From Prasinococcaceae sp. CCMP 1430 (Eukaryota > Plantae > Prasinodermophyta), in NCBI GenBank assembly GCA_013416795.1, contig RQSC01000033.1:92583-156582 (forward strand): a stretch of DNA of 64,000 bases, given 5' to 3'. The position numbers were made by a program, and so were the translations under genes. The stretch's first letter is position 1; every line of letters starts with the position of its first letter. The notes below the pieces were generated by a model, which did no database searches, was not told where the DNA came from, and saw nothing but the letters and a program-made list of their open reading frames with translations. Below, piece after piece: positions 1,526 through 64,000 of the stretch.

Positions 1526-2764
1526 ATGCACAGAGGCGCGCACGCGCTCGCTCGCGCCCGTCGCCCCTCCCCCCCCCGCCGCGTGCGCGCGGCGTGCGCC
1601 GCGACCGCCAAGGCGGAGGGCTCGGCGGCCGAGGACGAGAGCGAGCTCGCGTGCTTCGGCGTCTTCTGCCACACGCTGTCGGCCGAGGAGGCCGTGCCGA
1701 AGACGTGGAAGAAGACCATCCGCGTGGCCGTGTCCGGCGCTGCGGGCCAGATCTCGAACCACCTGCTGTTCATGCTCGCTTCGGGCGAGGTGTTCGGCGC
1801 GGACCAGCCCATCGCGCTGCAGCTGCTGGGCTCGGTGCGCTCGGCCGAGGCGCTCGAGGGCGTGGCGATGGAGCTCGAGGACTCGCTGTACCCGCTGCTG
1901 CGCGAGGTCCAGGTGGGCATCGACCCCGAGCAGGTGTTCGAAGACGCCGACTGGGCGCTGCTCATCGGCGCCAAGCCGCGCGGCCCCGGCATGGAGCGCT
2001 CGGACCTCCTCGACATGAACGGCCAGATCTTCGTGGGGCAGGGCCAGGCGCTCAACAAGGTGGCGTCGCGCGACGTGAAGGTGCTCGTGGTGGGCAACCC
2101 GTGCAACACCAACGCGCTCATCGCCTCCAAGAACGCGCCCGACCTCGACCCGCGCAACTTCCACGCGCTCACGCGCCTGGACGAGAACCGCGCCAAGTGC
2201 CAGATGGCGATCCAGTCGGGCTACTTCTACGACAGCATCTCCAACGTGACCATCTGGGGTAACCACTCGACCACTCAGGTGCCTGACTTCGTCAACGCCA
2301 AGATCGCCAAGAAGCCCGCGATCAACATCATCGGCCGCACGTGGCTCGAGGAGGACTTCACGCCCAAGATCCAGACGCGCGGCGGCGCGCTCATCAAGAA
2401 GTGGGGCCGCAGCTCGGCGGCGTCGACGGCCGTGTCGATCGCCGACCACATTCGCAGCCTGGTGACGCCCACCCCCGAGGGCGACTGGTTCTCCACCGCC
2501 GTCATCACGGACGGCAACGAGTACGGCATCCCCGAGGGCCTCGTCTACTCGATGCCCGCGCGCTCCAAGGGCGATGGCTCGTACGAGCTCGTGCCGGCCT
2601 CGGAGCTCAAACTCGATGACCCGTGGCTCAAGGAGAAGATGGCGGCCAGCGCGGACGAGCTCTCGAAGGAGCGCGACTGCGTGAGCCATCTCATCCCCGA
2701 CTCCCCGCCTGCGGCGTGCGGCATCAACAAGGAGGAGGACACATGGATCGAGGGTGAGAAATAA
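1526..2764 (+). CDS. NADP-MDH: Chloroplast NADP-dependent malate dehydrogenase (thioredoxin-regulated); 5' end uncertain (ATG 1526, or acceptor CAG at 1531-1533)
   Basis: [76 protein letters not shown]. It has the N-terminal CFGVFC and a C-terminal CVSHL...C..GE(K) extension. Confidence 0.97.
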
Positions 2765-2936
2765 TTTTGTAGGTGGCGGAGGAGGCGCGCAGGCACGCGC
2801 GCGCTCATTGGAAAGGGGAGAGGTGAGGGAGACACAGTGGCGCGGCAGGCGACAGCTGGCACGGGCGGGCTTGAAGCCGCCGTCGGCGACGCAAACCAGC
2901 CACCGCGCCGAGACCGGGGGCTCTGCACCTATTCAT

Positions 2937-2941
2937 TGTAA
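2937..2941 (+). terminator. TGTAA polyadenylation signal (MDH)
   Basis: Green-algal UGUAA near-upstream element in the 3' flank. The same motif follows FCF1 (14376), TML-like (18790), Lhcp (27894), DCC1-like (34541) and AlaRS (58632), and on the minus strand the VOC gene (28031). Confidence 0.6.
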
Positions 2942-3431
2942 GAGTATCTGATTCGGGTCGGGGAGGGTGGGGCGGGACGCGCGAGACCAGCCACGCGCGC
3001 GCGCTGTCGTCGGATGAGTTGCGTCTGTGTGTGGTGGTGTTTTTGAAACACCAGTTTTGTTTGTGTTGACGTCGTCGCGGGGCAGGTGTGGCCACCCGCC
3101 GCGTCGACAGGCTGAGGTCGTCGCCCGCGCGCGAGAGAGAGTCGCCCCCCGAGCGGGGCGGCGCGTGACGCCGCGTGTGCGCGTGCACGCGCGCGCGCGG
3201 ACTGTACGATACTGTAAGTGACACGCGACTCTTTTTTCGACTCACACGCACACACGCGCGCACACGCACACGCACAGACGCGCGCGTGTGTGCGACGGGC
3301 ACACGGCACTGCATGCACGCTCGCACAGGACGCGCGCTCACTCACTCACTCACTCAACAATGCTTTGTACATATGTGTGCGGATGGTGGCGGAGCGCACT
3401 GCGCACTGCGCACTGCGCACCCGCGCGACCC

Positions 3432-30449: not shown

Positions 30450-31841
30450 TCAATGGCCTGCTTTGGCGCCGCCTGCGTGGGCGCCCATGGCGCGCTCTGC
30501 AGCATCATCCGCGAGGCGCTTTGCCTGGTCGAGCTGCTCGTCCATGTCTCTGCCCTTTTCGATGGCATCAAAGTCCTCGTTTGCGGCAGCGTGCTCGTCT
30601 TCTAGCCACGCGTCCATCTCTTCAGCCCAGCCGTCGGCCTCGCGAGCGAGCTCCGCCGCATCGGCGGCACCGGCCGGAGGGATGCGCGCGAGCTCCGCCG
30701 CGGACTTGATCAGCGGCGCGATATAAGCCTTGGCCGCCTCGGCCGCGCGAGCTGCCAGCCCGCCAAGCCCACCGCTGGCACCAGCGGCCGCTGCTTCGGC
30801 CTCTTGCAGACGCTCCGAGCCGTACGACGTAAAAGGTGTCGATCCCCTCTGCGTCGCGGGCGCCATCTGGATCGCAACGCGCTCGCCTGCCACCGCCCGC
30901 CGCGGCGGCCGAAGCGGACCGCTGGCAGCCGCCCCGCCGCCCAGCCTCAGCGCACTTAACGCGTCACCGACCGCCCGTGCGTCTCCCGCGCTGCCGGTCT
31001 CCTCCGACACTCCGCCCAGCTCGAGTGTTGGCGCGAGCTCTCTATCTGTGAGCAGCGCGTCCCCGAGCGCGCCCTGGCCGTCGAGGCCGTCGAGGCTCGT
31101 CTCGGCCTCCGCGCCGGCCAGGGGGTTGCGAGCCACGCTTCCCCGCTGTCCCTTCTCAGCGGGCGCGTCGCTGGCACCGACTGTCGCTGCCGCACCAGCG
31201 GCGGGCGCCTCTAGCCTGGCCTTTCTCTCCGCGGCTGCGAGGCCATCCTTGTAGCCATCCATGTAGCCCGCCGAGTACGCGCTGTCCTCAGCCTCGACGC
31301 GTGCGGCACGCGCCGCCCGCGCGTCGTCGTCTCGGCGCGCGCGCTCTGCGCGGAGCTCCCTCGCGAGCAGCCTGATGCGTCCAACGGCGGAGAGTGCAGT
31401 GCGGCGCATACCATCATACCGTGCCCGAATCGACGCGTTGAGCCGCGCGAGGCGAAGCGCGCGCGCCTCAGCCAAGCCGAGCCCTTCAAGAACGGCCGCG
31501 CGCTCCTTGGTACGGTCGCCAGCGACGCGCTCGCGTTCGGCGGCAAGCGTGTTCTCAGCTTGTGCCTGTGCAGCTGCTCGGTCCATCGCCGCGCGCTCGG
31601 CGCTCGCCGCAGCGTCTGCTGCTGCGCCGAGCTCGGTGCGCAGCGCGTCGACCTCGCGTCGCAGGTGCTCGCTGCGCTCGTGCTCGTGGCCGTACCGTGC
31701 AGCGCTCATCTCCGCCTGGGCGTGTGCTGCCGCGGCAGCAAGCCATGGCTGCGCCGCGGGGGCAGGCAGTTGCGTGCCGGTTAAGCCGCCCGTGTAAAGC
31801 GGCACGTTGAACGCGTGCCCCTGCTGCAGCAGCGAGGTTTG

Positions 31842-31939
<98 letters not shown>

Positions 31940-58574: not shown

Positions 58575-59467
58575 GCCCGGCGCGTGGTGTGCGTGACCAG
58601 GCCGGACGCGCGCGGCGGGCAAGTGCGCTGCTGTAAGTTATCTTCGGGAGCACCTCGGCTGCGACGCGGCAATCGCGCCCGCCCGCCATCGCCCCGCGCG
58701 CGCGCGCGCGTGCGCGCCGCAGCATGCGGCGGGGCTCAAAAGGCAGAAACGGGAGACCTAGCATTCATCATACGCATGTGCGTTCGGCGCACGGTGTGCG
58801 CCGCGATGCGGCCGATGGTGGTCGATTCGATTGATTTTTGGTATTGGCACGCACATGGGGGCGTGGGCCCCTGGGCGGAGTGGAGCGCGCGCAAAGTGCG
58901 CGGGAGCAGGCGCGGATTTGCCATGCGGAAGGACCGCAGCAGGATTGGGCGCCGCAGATATGCGAAAGCGAAACGACGTCACGCGCGCCCTCCCCAAACG
59001 TTGTGCACTCATACTATTCGGCGCGCCCGATTTCTCGACGAAGGGATGGGGCGACTCGCGCCCCTCCGTTGGTTGATATATTTCTCCCCCTCTCGGAGCG
59101 CGCGCCGGGCGAGGGCGCGCTCGGCGTGGTTCGATTCGGTGGCGAAACTATGGGCCGATTATGATTCCACGGAGAGCGCGGGAGCGAAAGCGGCGCGCCC
59201 GTAAAGTGCGAGGTGCGCCCGCACCAGCGATTGCGCGGCCGCGCGAGCGCGAAACGGCCGTGGGAGCATCTGCGGGGCGCGCGCTCGTTGGTGGGAGCGC
59301 GCGCCCGCGCGGCGCGCGCGTGTTGCGAGGCCGCGCCGCGGGGGCGAGGGCTGGGCGGGGTGTTGCGTTGCGGGCGGGGTGTGGGGTGTTGGGGGGGGGA
59401 GGGGGGTGGCGGCCCGGCGGGGTGCCACAGCGCGGCCATCCCGCGCGCACACTCGACCGAGCGCGCG

Positions 59468-62400
59468 ATGGACGACGAAGCATCGGTGAGCGGCGCCGGG
59501 CGCGGCGCGGGCGCTCGCGGGCGCCGGCGCGCGCGCGCGCCGCGGGTGAGCAGCGGGCCTGCGCGAGTGACTGCGCGCAATTTTTTTTTTTCGACGCCGG
59601 CTACACCTGTGGCCGCCTGTTGGCGAATCTGACTGCGTGAGGCGCGTGTCGTGCGTACGCTGACTTCCCCGCCTCCTGGCCCCACCCTCGCGTGCGCTTG
59701 GCGCAGCCCCCGGTCCCTCAGATGGGCCCTGACTCTCCGCTTCCTCGGACTACTCCAACCGAGGGCCTGGTGCCGTCGCTCAGCGGCGGCAGCGAGCCCG
59801 TGGCCATGAAGGCCAACGAGCTCAGCGAGGACGGGAAGCGCGGTTGGAAGCGCGGCGCAGATGCCAGCCCCCCAGGCGCCGACGCCGAGACGCGCCTGCC
59901 CGTCAACAAGCGCAAGTGCACGCACGAGGGCGAGGGTGAGGACGAGCACGCCAAGGAGCGCTCCTCCGCCGCGGTCCGTGGGCTTCTCAAGGTACGCGCC
60001 TTGGTCGAGATGGCAATACGTGAATGCGCCCTTGCTCGCTTCACCGCAGCGCATTTGGCGGCGATGGGGGCGGCTTTCCAGCTGTGCACCACGCACGCGG
60101 TGTCGCTTCCTCAAGACTGCTCGCGCTCGCGTGTCGCCTGGGAGGGGTAGCGAATGAGCCAGGGGGGAGGAGAACACGCGCCGCCGCCGCGCCCAGGCGC
60201 GCTCTTCGCGCGGCGCGTTTCTTTGGTCTCCCGCAGCAAAGTGCGCGACGCCGCGCGCGACGCCGCGGCGGGGTGCGCCGCATCGCGGCGGCCGGCTCGG
60301 CCGCCGCGTCGGCCGACGAGCTCGCGGCGCTCCTGGGGGGATCCCTCTCCATCAAGGAGGGCGGCGCACCCAACGCCGCCGCGGAGGCCGCCGCCCCGAC
60401 ACCCGCCGCCGGCCCCGCCGCGAGGGACGATGCCGACCGGAGGGCCTCCCGACGACGAGATGCGCTCGACCCGGACGACCTCGCTGGTCTGGTGGAGAGC
60501 GCGCTGTCGCTCTCGGGGCGCCAGGCGTCGGCGCCCGCGGGGCCGGTCAAGTCGAAGGCGCCCGCGCGCCTCACGGACTCGCACGGCTCGCTGGACGCCC
60601 TGCTGGGCGCGCCGCGGGCGGCGCCCAGGCCGCCGCGGGCGCGCCAGGAGGCGGCGTCCGGCGCATCAGCAGGCATCCCTCGCCGCGGGGTTCGCGCGCC
60701 GCTCGAGTCCCTGAGCTCCAACACGGCCGAGGCGAACCAGCGCGAAACGAGCAGCAGTACCAGCAGCACCACCACAACTACCACCACCACCACAACCACC
60801 ACCACCACCACCGCCACCACCACCACCAGCGGCGCCCCTCGCCGCCAGACGCAGTCCGCGCCGGGCGCGCTGCCGGCGCCGGAGGACCCGCTGCGCGACA
60901 CGGCCCAATCGCGCCAACTCGCGCCATCGTCATCTTCAGACGCGACCCTCTCCCCACACCTGCGCTCGCTCCTGAAACACGCCGACCCGAGCGCGCCGCT
61001 CACCGACGACGGCGACGACAGGCGCACGCTCTACCCGTACCAGCAGTCCGCCGTGCTCTCCATCCTCAAGCAGGAGCGCGTCATTCTGGCGTACGACATG
61101 GGGCTGGGCAAGACGCTCATCGCGCTGGTGGCGGCGCGCGCGTGGGCGCGGTCCCGAGGCGCCAAGGTGGTGGTGCTGGCCCCAAAGAGCGTGTTGGAGA
61201 GCTGGCGCCGCGAGGCGGCCGCAGCGGACGTCGCCATCGACGCGCACTCGTGGGCGAAGGTGCCCTCCGTGCAGCAGCTCGACCTCGCCCCCGACAACAG
61301 CAGCAACGACAGCAGCAAAAACAGCAGCAAAAACAGCAGCAAAAACAGCAGCAACGACAACAGCAGCAACAAACCCCGGCCCTTCGTGCTGCTGGCGGAC
61401 GAGGCGCACTACATGCAGTCGCCCAAGGCCAAGCGCACCCGGGACGCGCTGGCGCTGGCGCTCGCGCCGTCGTGCGTCGCCTGCGTGCTCATCACGGGCA
61501 CGCCCATGCGCAACGGCGACGTGGCCAACCTCGTGCCGCTGCTGCAGGCCGCGCGCGAGCGCCGCCTCGCGGACGACCCCAAGGGCTTCGTCAGGCGCTA
61601 CAAGGGGGACCTCGCGGCGCTGCACCGCGCCACGCGCCACGTGGTCCTGCGCCGCACCAAGGCGCAGTGCGTGGACCTGCCGCCCAAGACCCGCGTGGTG
61701 CTGCGCGCCGACCCGTCGGCCGCCGAGCGCTCGGCGTACGCCCGGGCGGTGGCGGAGGCGCGCCGTCGGCGCGGGGGGGAGGGCGGGCGCGCAGCGACCC
61801 AGCGCGGGTGGTGGGGGCGACGAGAGAGCAAGGGGGGGGGCATGCGGGCGAGCGCGGCTGACGCGCGCGGCGCGCTTGGGCGCCTGCTCGCCAAAGGAGC
61901 CTGAAGTGCTGGGCCGCGTGCGCGAGATGCTTCTGAGCCAGCAGATCGAGTTCACGTGGCAGCTGGCGGAGATGCACCGACTGGTGACGCGCCAACGCGT
62001 GATCGTGGGCGGCGGCACGCGAGAGGAGGCCGACCGCGCCGCGGCGGCCAAGCTCGCAGCTGTGGCCAGGGCGAAGGCAATCGGCGAGGGTGACGGCGCG
62101 GGTGGCGAGGCTGGGGCGCGCGCACACGGCATGCAGCTGCCGCCGCGGCTCGTGCTCAACGCGAACGGCGAGAACGCGAGTGGGCCTGAGACTCGCAACG
62201 GTGGGCTGGATGACATGATGGTCGCCTGGCCGCCGTCCAAAGCCATGGCGGACAACTCGTTGCGCATGAGTGCCCGCATGGCTGCGATGGCCCGAGCTGC
62301 GGCGACGTCCGCCCCACACGGGAGCGCCGTGTCGGGCGCGCCGAGGCGGCAGGCGGCCGCGACGGCCAAGGAGATGACGGAGTCGTTCTCGCTTCCGCCG

Positions 62401-62883
62401 CGCGTGCGCCTCGTCGAGACGAGCACAACGCATCTCATCGAGCGCGTGGCTGAGGGGCAAGAGGGAGAGCTGGCCAAGCCATCGACGGCGTCGAAGATGA
62501 AGCAGCGGGGCGGGCGCAAGGGTGCAGGCAAGGGCGGGAAGAAGGGTGGGGGCGTGCCGACCACTGCCCCGCATGGAGAGGATACCCAGACTCCCATAGC
62601 GGGTGTGCCTGTCGCCAACCCTCTGTTGTTGGCCCAGCAGGCGCAGGCGCAGGCCGCTGCGGCGCTGGCCGCGCCGACGGCGGCCGCACAGCAGGTGCAG
62701 GCGCAGCAGCAGCAGCTTGCAGCGATGCGGGCCCACTTAGCAGCGATGCAGGCGCAGGTGCAGGTGCCGCCGCAGCTAGGGGTGCAAGGCCAGCACCTGC
62801 CGCAGCAGCAGGCGCAGCAACTGGCGGCGATGCAGCAGCTCGGGGCGTTGCAGCAAATGGCAGCGATGCTGCAGTTCGACCCG

Positions 62884-62921
<38 letters not shown>

Positions 62922-63137
62922 GCAACAGCAGTCACCTGCGCCCAAACCCGGAACACAACCCACCACGCCGCCGATGGCCATGGCTGCCGCCAGCCAGTTC
63001 GGGATGGTCCCGAACCCGCAGCTGCAGCTCCTGGGAATGGGTCTGAACCCTTTTCTGGGTGCGGGCATGGGCATGGCGTCAGGCGCGCAGCAGGTGCCAA
63101 GCTTTCCCAACGCGTTCGCACCCGCCGCGGCCCTCGC

Positions 63138-63173
<36 letters not shown>

Positions 63174-63216
63174 GCAGAATCAGAGCGCGTTCGCTCCGTA
63201 CCCCCCACAAAGCTGA
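59468..63216 (+). CDS. ELF3-like protein with Q-rich prion-like C-terminus; proposed exons 59468-59485, 59707(or 59722)-59991 and 61897-63216
   Basis: Canonical sites GTGAGC (59486), CTGAC..CAG (59706/59721), GTACGC (59992) and CTGAC..AAG (61896), all phase 0. The spliced product SSAAVRGLLK|EPEVLGRVREMLLSQQIEFTWQLAEMHRLVTRQRVI matches the ELF3 block S.D.V.GIL....FWRARKAI.NQQRVF..QLFELHRLIKVQ.LI. Confidence 0.65.
60237..61904 (+). CDS. SNF2-family helicase N-terminal ATPase lobe only (bacterial/cyanobacterial-like), no own start codon, nested in the proposed ELF3-like intron 2
   Basis: LYPYQQ (Q motif), ILAYDMGLGKT (I), VVLAPKSV..SW (Ia), LLADEAHYMQS (II), LITGTPMRN (III), VLRRTK..CVDLPPK. 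No RecA2 lobe motifs IV-VI before the stop. Confidence 0.8.
   Translation, partial: QSARRRARRRGGVRRIAAAGSAAASADELAALLGGSLSIKEGGAPNAAAEAAAPTPAAGPAARDDADRRASRRRDALDPDDLAGLVESALSLSGRQASAPAGPVKSKAPARLTDSHGSLDALLGAPRAAPRPPRARQEAASGASAGIPRRGVRAPLESLSSNTAEANQRETSSSTSSTTTTTTTTTTTTTTTATTTTSGAPRRQTQSAPGALPAPEDPLRDTAQSRQLAPSSSSDATLSPHLRSLLKHADPSAPLTDDGDDRRTLYPYQQSAVLSILKQERVILAYDMGLGKTLIALVAARAWARSRGAKVVVLAPKSVLESWRREAAAADVAIDAHSWAKVPSVQQLDLAPDNSSNDSSKNSSKNSSKNSSNDNSSNKPRPFVLLADEAHYMQSPKAKRTRDALALALAPSCVACVLITGTPMRNGDVANLVPLLQAARERRLADDPKGFVRRYKGDLAALHRATRHVVLRRTKAQCVDLPPKTRVVLRADPSAAERSAYARAVAEARRRRGGEGGRAATQRGWWGRRESKGGGMRASAADARGALGRLLAKGA
60769..60828. repeat. (ACC)n trinucleotide repeat encoding poly-Thr
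   Basis: ACC/ACA/ACT run inside the SNF2-like ORF. Confidence 0.9.
61305..61372. repeat. 12-bp (AACAGCAGCAAA-like) tandem repeat encoding NSSK/NSSND
   Basis: Repeat expansion inserted between helicase motifs Ia and II. Confidence 0.85.
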
Positions 63217-63313
63217 GCGCGTGCGTCGTTGTGAGGTGTGGTCGCACCAACGACTGCACCTATGTCAAAGCAAGAGATTTACTTCTGCCCACCCGCGCGA
63301 TTGGCCGCCTCGG

Positions 63314-64000
63314 CTAGCCGATGCGCGTCTGCGGCATGTACAGCGGATCTGGCATGGGCACGGACACGAACTCAACCCTGCCGCAGAACAGCGTCAGGCC
63401 GCCGCGCTTGGTGCGACCCACCGCGCCAGCACAGATAATAACGTCGCCTGCATGACCACGCACGCACACGCACCGACAGCCCCGCGCGTCGAGAGGTCTC
63501 GTCAGCACGAACAAGGGCCGCCACCGGTGCCCGCAGGTAGCTGGATGCGCTCTCGCAAGCGCAGGCTGAGGGGAGGCGCGCGCCAACGCCACGCACCTGT
63601 CTTGATGGCACTGCTCACGGCGGTGAAAGGTGCCGCATCGGGATATTTCAAATGCGACGCGCTGAGCAGGACCTGACAGCTTGGCGCCAGTGCGGCCTCG
63701 GCCGCGAGCGTCCTCTCGTTCCTTTCATCTGCGCCATCGGCGGCCTCAACGATGTCTGTGAGCGTGAGGAACGCCAGAAAGCGATTGCGCACACGCACCG
63801 ATGTCACGCGGCCCTTGACGCGCACACTAGGAAGGCTTTCGAGCGCCACGGTGTCTTCAAGCTTGGCCTCAAACACCGGTGCATTCGCAGTGTAAGTAGT
63901 CACGAACTGCAGCACGGCACTGGCGTCCTCAACGTCAAGTGCATCGGCATCATCCACGCCCAAAGCGACCGCCCTCGCGCGGGCCGCCTCGGTGCGGTCG
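63314..64000 (-). CDS. Protein ending in a stand-alone LysRS-type anticodon-binding OB fold; partial (continues beyond window); intron 63596-63448
   Basis: QFVTTY...VRVKGRVTSVR...LAFLTL...AIKT|GDVIICAGAVGRTKRGGLTLF then stop. This parallels the LysRS N-domain (V.GR....R...F..L...GD.I...G..G.TK.GELSI) but no catalytic domain follows. Confidence 0.7.

Follow-up and report, generated by a model that had tools for sequence, protein, structure and literature searches.

The 64,000-nucleotide (nt) stretch analysed here (hereafter the window; contig RQSC01000033.1, positions 92,583 to 156,582 of the forward strand, Prasinococcaceae sp. CCMP 1430) contains at 59468-63216 a genuine gene of Prasinoderma coloniale, which has three exons and is expressed. 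As far as sequence comparison can tell, its product of 540 residues has one helix in common with the clock protein ELF3 and with CETL of Chlamydomonas, the helix of the conserved Block II, and nothing else detectable. Because this helix is the only detectable likeness, the gene would be a new and much smaller member of the Block-II-only ELF3-like group, from the deepest-branching green phylum. On balance we lean towards the view that it encodes a mostly disordered, probably nuclear protein, the Prasinoderma-lineage counterpart of the chlorophyte Block-II-only ELF3-like proteins such as CETL.

The gene model was established by comparing window positions 59300-63400 with public assembled contigs of three RNA runs from separate studies and of one DNA run (X10). 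X1 is RNA from a culture of the organism (depth 120), while X2 and X4 are marine metatranscriptomes that are 95-99% identical to the window. The parts of the gene are:

59468-59485, + strand: exon 1, ATG and five further codons (MDDEAS), phase 0; RNA contigs start at 59458 (X1) and 59427 (X4)
59486-59706, + strand: intron 1, 221 nt, GT..AG, joint in RNA of X1, X2 and X4
59707-59991, + strand: exon 2, 95 codons, with colinear RNA contigs; rich in P, S and E, with a basic KRK cluster
59992-61896, + strand: intron 2, 1,905 nt, GT..AG, joint in RNA of X1, X2 and X4
61897-63216, + strand: exon 3, 439 codons and TGA (63214-63216), from translation

The coding sequence comprises 6 + 95 + 439 codons, 540 in all, closed by TGA and with phase-0 junctions throughout. 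Both splice joints, 59485|59707 and 59991|61897, are found in the RNA contigs of all three studies and neither in the contigs of the DNA run; exon 3 is covered by RNA contigs at 61894-62876, 62934-63128 and 63190-63289. Coding constraint is evident from the ocean transcripts, in which eight of the 11 sites that vary relative to the window are synonymous in the frame of the gene. The three phase-0 exons that a first-pass annotation had proposed from the sequence alone are thus borne out, and the 59991/61897 junction, for which it had named an RNA check, is spliced exactly there in X1, X2 and X4. The G+C content of the window is ~69%, and that of the published Prasinoderma coloniale genome 69.8% (PMC7455551); together with the 100% protein identity between part of the window and the EukProt entry PRCOL_00003710-RA, this points to P. 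coloniale itself or a very close strain.

For the comparison with ELF3 we used the Block I-IV strings of Arabidopsis, tomato, maize and rice ELF3 and Region 1 of Chlamydomonas CETL (Cre07.g357500), taken from the machine-read S6 Fig of PMC9612821. Searched against the six-frame translation of the window (120,407 residues), the Block II and Region 1 queries have a single good match, with E values from 3e-4 to 2e-3, whereas their next-best matches lie at E > 1:

61915-62013, + strand: helix resembling ELF3 Block II and CETL Region 1, exon 3 residues 7-39, RVREMLLSQQIEFTWQLAEMHRLVTRQRVIVGG; from hhalign, BLAST and AlphaFold2

In BLAST at this scale the ELF3 Block II strings reach E 1e-3 to 3e-4 and the CETL string E 3e-4, with 45% identity over 31 residues; 13 of the 33 residues of the motif are identical in Arabidopsis ELF3 (AtELF3). 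The same strings independently match the marine ortholog (P0014) of the window protein, with 27.7 and 25.8 bits. An alignment of the Prasinoderma-lineage pair (A1) compared by hhalign with one of ELF3 and CETL (A4) gives a probability of 94% and P 1.3e-7 over 33 columns with 39% identity, and eight columns are invariant among the window protein, the ortholog P0001, three ELF3s and CETL. The identities are concentrated at positions that are fixed in the Prasinoderma lineage: AtELF3 has the same residue at 11 of the 17 positions where the two orthologs agree and at two of the 16 where they differ (Fisher p 0.003). The 33 columns run from R..R to ..I and make up the matched core (R.R.....QQ..F..QL.E.HRL...Q..I). 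Each exon was searched separately. At the exon 2/3 junction the motif reads ...AVRGLLK | EPEVLGRVREMLLSQQIEFTWQLAEMHRLVTRQRVIV, and there it was compared by eye with its exon 2 side included; its upstream edge is encoded by the 3' end of exon 2 (...SSAAVRGLLK). AlphaFold2 predicts a long helix at exon 3 residues 2-37 (predicted local distance difference test, pLDDT, 74-91) and a second one at 42-68, with mostly low confidence for the remainder. The earlier claim that the motif matches a conserved ELF3 block therefore stands as to significance, and is to be narrowed as to extent, since the similarity is short and confined to one helix.

CETL has been linked to the clock experimentally and likewise has Block II only in common with ELF3, next to a Region 2 that is specific to chlorophytes; matches to CETL are known from Chlorophyceae and, at BLAST E<=1, from Trebouxiophyceae and Micromonas (PMC9612821). 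The first-pass annotation had regarded a divergent Chlamydomonas protein as the only homolog beyond streptophytes, and this premise of novelty was overstated, because the same study had already aligned chlorophyte CETL matches with ELF3 in 2022. Our literature search found no paper that names ELF3 together with Prasinoderma. CETL resembles the window protein as follows: the part of CETL shared with ELF3 is Region 1 alone, a portion of Block II, which is identical to the window motif at 13 of 33 residues when both are aligned in one register, and both proteins are long, of low complexity and rich in Q, A and P, without convincing Blocks I, III and IV. In contrast, CETL has 2,392 residues, compared to 540 in the window protein; the equivalent of Gly-326 is conserved in CETL and not in the window protein; and a role of CETL in ROC15 degradation and phase resetting is supported by genetic evidence, whereas the window gene is known from sequence and transcripts. 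With streptophyte ELF3/EEC proteins the window protein shares the Block II core, a largely disordered character and a Q-rich stretch C-terminal to the motif, but it has no detectable Blocks I, III and IV, no Gly-326 and no match at database level.

Several observations weigh against a relationship to ELF3 and CETL. The similarity spans 33 columns only, pairwise E values would be ~0.01-0.03 at proteome scale, and the ELF3/CETL strings are short, come from four sequences only and carry a risk of optical character recognition errors (one doubling, 'VFVAV' to 'VFAV', was reduced according to the printed residue numbers). HMMER, run exhaustively with a profile against 1.84 billion representative proteins, retrieved no ELF3 or CETL at E<=1e-3; what it returned were fragments of the Prasinoderma-lineage gene family and one spurious repeat protein. 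String searches detect none of ELF3 Blocks I, III and IV, either in the gene or in P0014. Two Block I strings (MFPRLHVND...PPRNKMALYEQ) have their best matches outside the spliced gene (E 0.2-0.5), one of them in an SNF2 open reading frame within intron 2, and the best Block I match in P0014 is an unconvincing one of 10 residues (E 0.04); Block III (QWLIPVMSPSEGLIYKP) and the C-terminal Block IV (RVIKVVPHN...AARIFQSIQEER) match neither the gene nor P0014. Within Block II itself (consensus ILGxKxFWxARxAIxNQQRVFAVQxFELHRLIKVQxLIA) the N-terminal third, ILGxKxFW, is unmatched. Gly-326, the elf3-12 site, is fully conserved in 33 aligned proteins (PMC9612821), whereas the corresponding position, when the hhalign register is extended without gaps, is occupied by E in the window protein, where exon 3 begins with this residue, and by K in the ortholog; an indel of one residue would place K/P there, and a conserved Gly lies four residues upstream (RGLLK / AGSLPK; exons compared by eye). 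Nor is there any similarity in two CETL segments that follow Region 1. The window gene is accordingly not a canonical ELF3, contrary to the identity first proposed for it.

Searches with a wider scope add little to this picture. An ESM Atlas look-alike search and a PDB profile search found nothing, a word-based protein search found the marine ortholog only, and a second one that started from strings of ELF3 and CETL brought up no ELF3, its candidates being dominated by low-complexity words. Pfam, the library of which includes DUF863 (PF05904), has no match for any exon, for the ortholog P0001 or for the isolated motif at E<=1 to 10.

How the shared helix arose can be explained in several ways. 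On the one hand, the window protein may be a lineage-specific disordered nuclear protein whose likeness to ELF3 Block II in one helix is due to convergence or chance, with neither ancestry nor function in common with ELF3 and CETL. The likeness of one short helix, with no other ELF3 block, agrees with this, as does the database-wide HMMER search without ELF3, and the larger conserved core of the protein (residues 77-200) has no counterpart anywhere searched. Yet the hhalign P value, the uniqueness of the match at window scale for four queries, the concentration of identities at lineage-fixed positions and the match in the same register to CETL, from an independent and distant lineage, all argue against coincidence, and we regard this explanation as possible but clearly less probable than a kinship with CETL. 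On the other hand, kinship could reach deeper: the Block II helix may tentatively be seen as an ancestral module of all Viridiplantae that predates the split of Prasinodermophyta, in which case the protein of 540 residues would be near a minimal ancestral ELF3/CETL scaffold, docking LUX-like or ELF4-like proteins or photoreceptors by its helix; this stronger proposal we hold to be possible but less probable than not. That the protein is of the DUF863 type rather than the ELF3 type, an option raised by the first-pass annotation, is highly improbable. Its one support is the remark in that annotation that a related motif exists in DUF863 proteins, and neither exon 3 nor the ortholog nor the isolated motif matches DUF863 in Pfam even at E<=10. 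Pfam by itself cannot decide between ELF3 and DUF863, because AtELF3 Block II is also without a match in it; for the same reason it does not tie AtELF3 Block II to DUF863.

The full reading of the first-pass annotation is that of a true ELF3 ortholog with a polyglutamine (polyQ) prion-like domain as an ancestral thermosensor, a design older than the chlorophyte/streptophyte split. The two polyQ tracts that it had noticed at about 62888 and 63139 are indeed present, in the C-terminal part of the protein:

62614-63213, + strand: low-complexity tail rich in Q, A, P and M, with Q11 at 62887-62919 and Q13 at 63139-63177; from composition and Q/N counts

The C-terminal 200 residues consist of 31% Q, 21% A, 10% P, 9% L and 6% M. 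The usual threshold for prion-like composition is 30 Q+N per 80 residues, and the window protein reaches a maximum of 36, in a tail that follows a Block II-like motif. The polyQ of Arabidopsis ELF3 (in the 545-571 row) is likewise C-terminal to Block II at 324-381 (PMC9612821 S6 Fig). Comparison with the ortholog largely refutes the reading, however: in P0014 both polyQ tracts correspond to gaps in the alignment and Q+N amount to 13 per 80 residues. The tail has short conserved islands (NPLL, QLQxLG.NPxL and FAPYP). Another locus of the window, 31839-31937 on the minus strand, holds two long CAG tracts of 13 and 19 units, and therefore such expansions appear to be common in this genome. Prion-like domains predicted in ELF3 are reported to occur mainly in Brassicales, and no ELF3 was counted in Chlamydomonas (PMC11523139); Linde et al. 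(2017), as cited in the same paper, placed ELF3 at the origin of charophytes. Because the ortholog is without polyQ and ELF3 prion-like domains are largely those of Brassicales, an ancestral combination of ELF3 and a prion-like domain is unsupported, and with Blocks I, III and IV absent as well we consider it very unlikely. Judged by these alignments, the polyQ tracts are recent CAG expansions, specific to this lineage, in a genome that is GC-rich and prone to repeats, and not an inherited ELF3 prion-like domain; the window polyQ is not orthologous to the tract of Brassicales ELF3. More generally, where algal genomes are GC-rich, polyQ or 'prion-like' tails are cheap expansions of single lineages and should not be taken for conserved thermosensors.

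Returning to the Prasinoderma-lineage counterpart of CETL as the preferred interpretation, the amphipathic Block II helix might serve as a surface for docking to other proteins, and the low-complexity tail might add multivalent, weak self-association, possibly in the setting of a nuclear light- or clock-signalling complex or of a transcriptional co-regulator complex. A role as a clock or light-signalling scaffold is plausible on these grounds, as is a nuclear location. The phylum of Prasinoderma branched off before the chlorophyte/streptophyte split. If the kinship is true, a Block II helix in Prasinoderma coloniale would date this module back to the base of all green plants, and the gene would provide a protein small and tractable enough for studying what Block II binds.

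The closest ortholog belongs to a marine relative and is present in at least 24 contigs from marine metagenomes and, in spliced form, among transcripts. Over exon 3 residues 7-200 the window protein and P0001 are 59% identical. The position of intron 2, inside the motif, is kept in the ortholog, the intron of which has only ~624 nt (contig L008, exons 919-1266 and 1891-3240), and in contig L001 the acceptor (...tgtgcAG|GAG) lies at the same codon as the intron 2 acceptor of the window. The product of exon 2, which is probably disordered, has no detectable similarity to the N-terminus of the marine ortholog. Three further parts of the protein are encoded downstream of the Block II-like helix in exon 3:

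62020-62100, + strand: second predicted helix, residues 42-68, rich in A, E and K; AlphaFold2 pLDDT ~77-89; partly conserved in P0014
62125-62496, + strand: lineage-specific conserved core, residues 77-200, with HGMxLPPRLVL, MVAWPPSKAMADxSLRMSA and FSLPPRVRLVET..H.IERV.EGQEGEL
62494-62556, + strand: basic G/K-rich cluster, KMKQRGGRKGAGKGGKKGGG, read from the sequence

The core contains near-invariant blocks between the window protein and P0014, is predicted by AlphaFold2 with low confidence and has no match in Pfam, PDB or the Atlas. According to these searches this segment of ~120 residues is known so far only from Prasinoderma coloniale and one marine relative, the latter in metagenomes and metatranscriptomes. 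Where the window protein has the basic cluster the ortholog carries RKSRSHGGRGKGSKAGGKGRGGG, and the cluster may be a nuclear-localisation or RGG-like element.

The marine relative also possesses a LUX-type GARP gene (L001:372-1765, L015-L020), the top PDB match of which is LUX (6QEC, E 1.7e-18). It encodes an N-terminal region of more than 430 residues, has an intron followed by VASHLQKYRLYLKRL, and ends in a Q-rich tail. LUX ARRHYTHMO-type GARP factors have nothing in common with the window gene; they are of interest here as a potential partner that is present in the relative. In contig L001 the Block II module runs in frame into the GARP domain, which could be taken for a fusion of ELF3 and LUX. 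The contig is a chimera, however: its left 657 nt are an ordinary ELF3-like locus, 99% identical to L007/L008, which is followed by its normal downstream sequence in at least 24 contigs; in six other contigs the GARP gene begins with a long N-terminus unlike that of L001, and the sequence they have in common with L001 starts only at nt 644; and the join is a 14-nt overlap.

Intron 2 contains a piece of a second gene:

60288-61787, + strand: SNF2 helicase fragment inside intron 2, comprising an N-terminal disordered region and the SNF2_N lobe, without start codon and Helicase_C

This open reading frame, on the same strand as the gene, matches Pfam SNF2-rel_dom (E 1.8e-18) and, weakly, CHD1L, Fft3 and SMARCA5 in the PDB. 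In all aligned blocks it has 100% identity with the central part of PRCOL_00003710-RA of EukProt (P0016), a protein of 718 residues; the N-terminus and the Helicase_C domain that this protein also has are missing from the window. No RNA contig of X1 extends over the fragment. In the contigs of X10 the SNF2 sequence runs on into DNA that is not in the window, for 2,533 nt to the left and 2,086 nt to the right, and the flanks of the ELF3-like gene pass at 60287 and 61770 into other sequence that is likewise absent from the window; the Tara scaffold L003 departs from the window exactly at 61770. The junctions of the fragment lie at 60284-60287 and 61770-61791, the right one being a G-rich microhomology of 22 nt. 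The window contains an N gap, and no transposon hallmarks were seen around the fragment. An assembly or gap-filling error is the more likely explanation, the other being a very recent strain-specific insertion; in either case the fragment is no part of the product of the ELF3-like gene. What looks like half a helicase nested in an intron has been copied from another gene, and a fault of the assembly may account for it.

An acceptor-like site at 60237 (tctcccgcag|CAA), in frame with exon 2, leads into the SNF2 open reading frame and is used by no RNA contig. Within exon 3, metagenome scaffolds L003, L004 and L005 suggested alternative splicing at 62180. We rejected this candidate: there is no GT at the break of L003, and the RNA and X10 contigs are continuous. 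Two independent Tara scaffold families leave exon 3 within ~20 nt of each other (window ~62180-62200; L003:552-911; L004:940-1340), and the scaffolds that break off there are probably chimeric. Beyond its break, L004 contains a Cys-rich open reading frame (CHTCGC...CSLCGRGYHTYDCG).

The SNF2 fragment itself includes two repetitive segments, a run of 15 Thr at 60768-60812 within a longer T-rich stretch of ACC-type repeats, and an (S/N/K)-rich repeat at 61290-61372 (AGCAGCAAAAAC). Both are removed as introns in the gene model of PRCOL_00003710, and these introns may be annotation artefacts.

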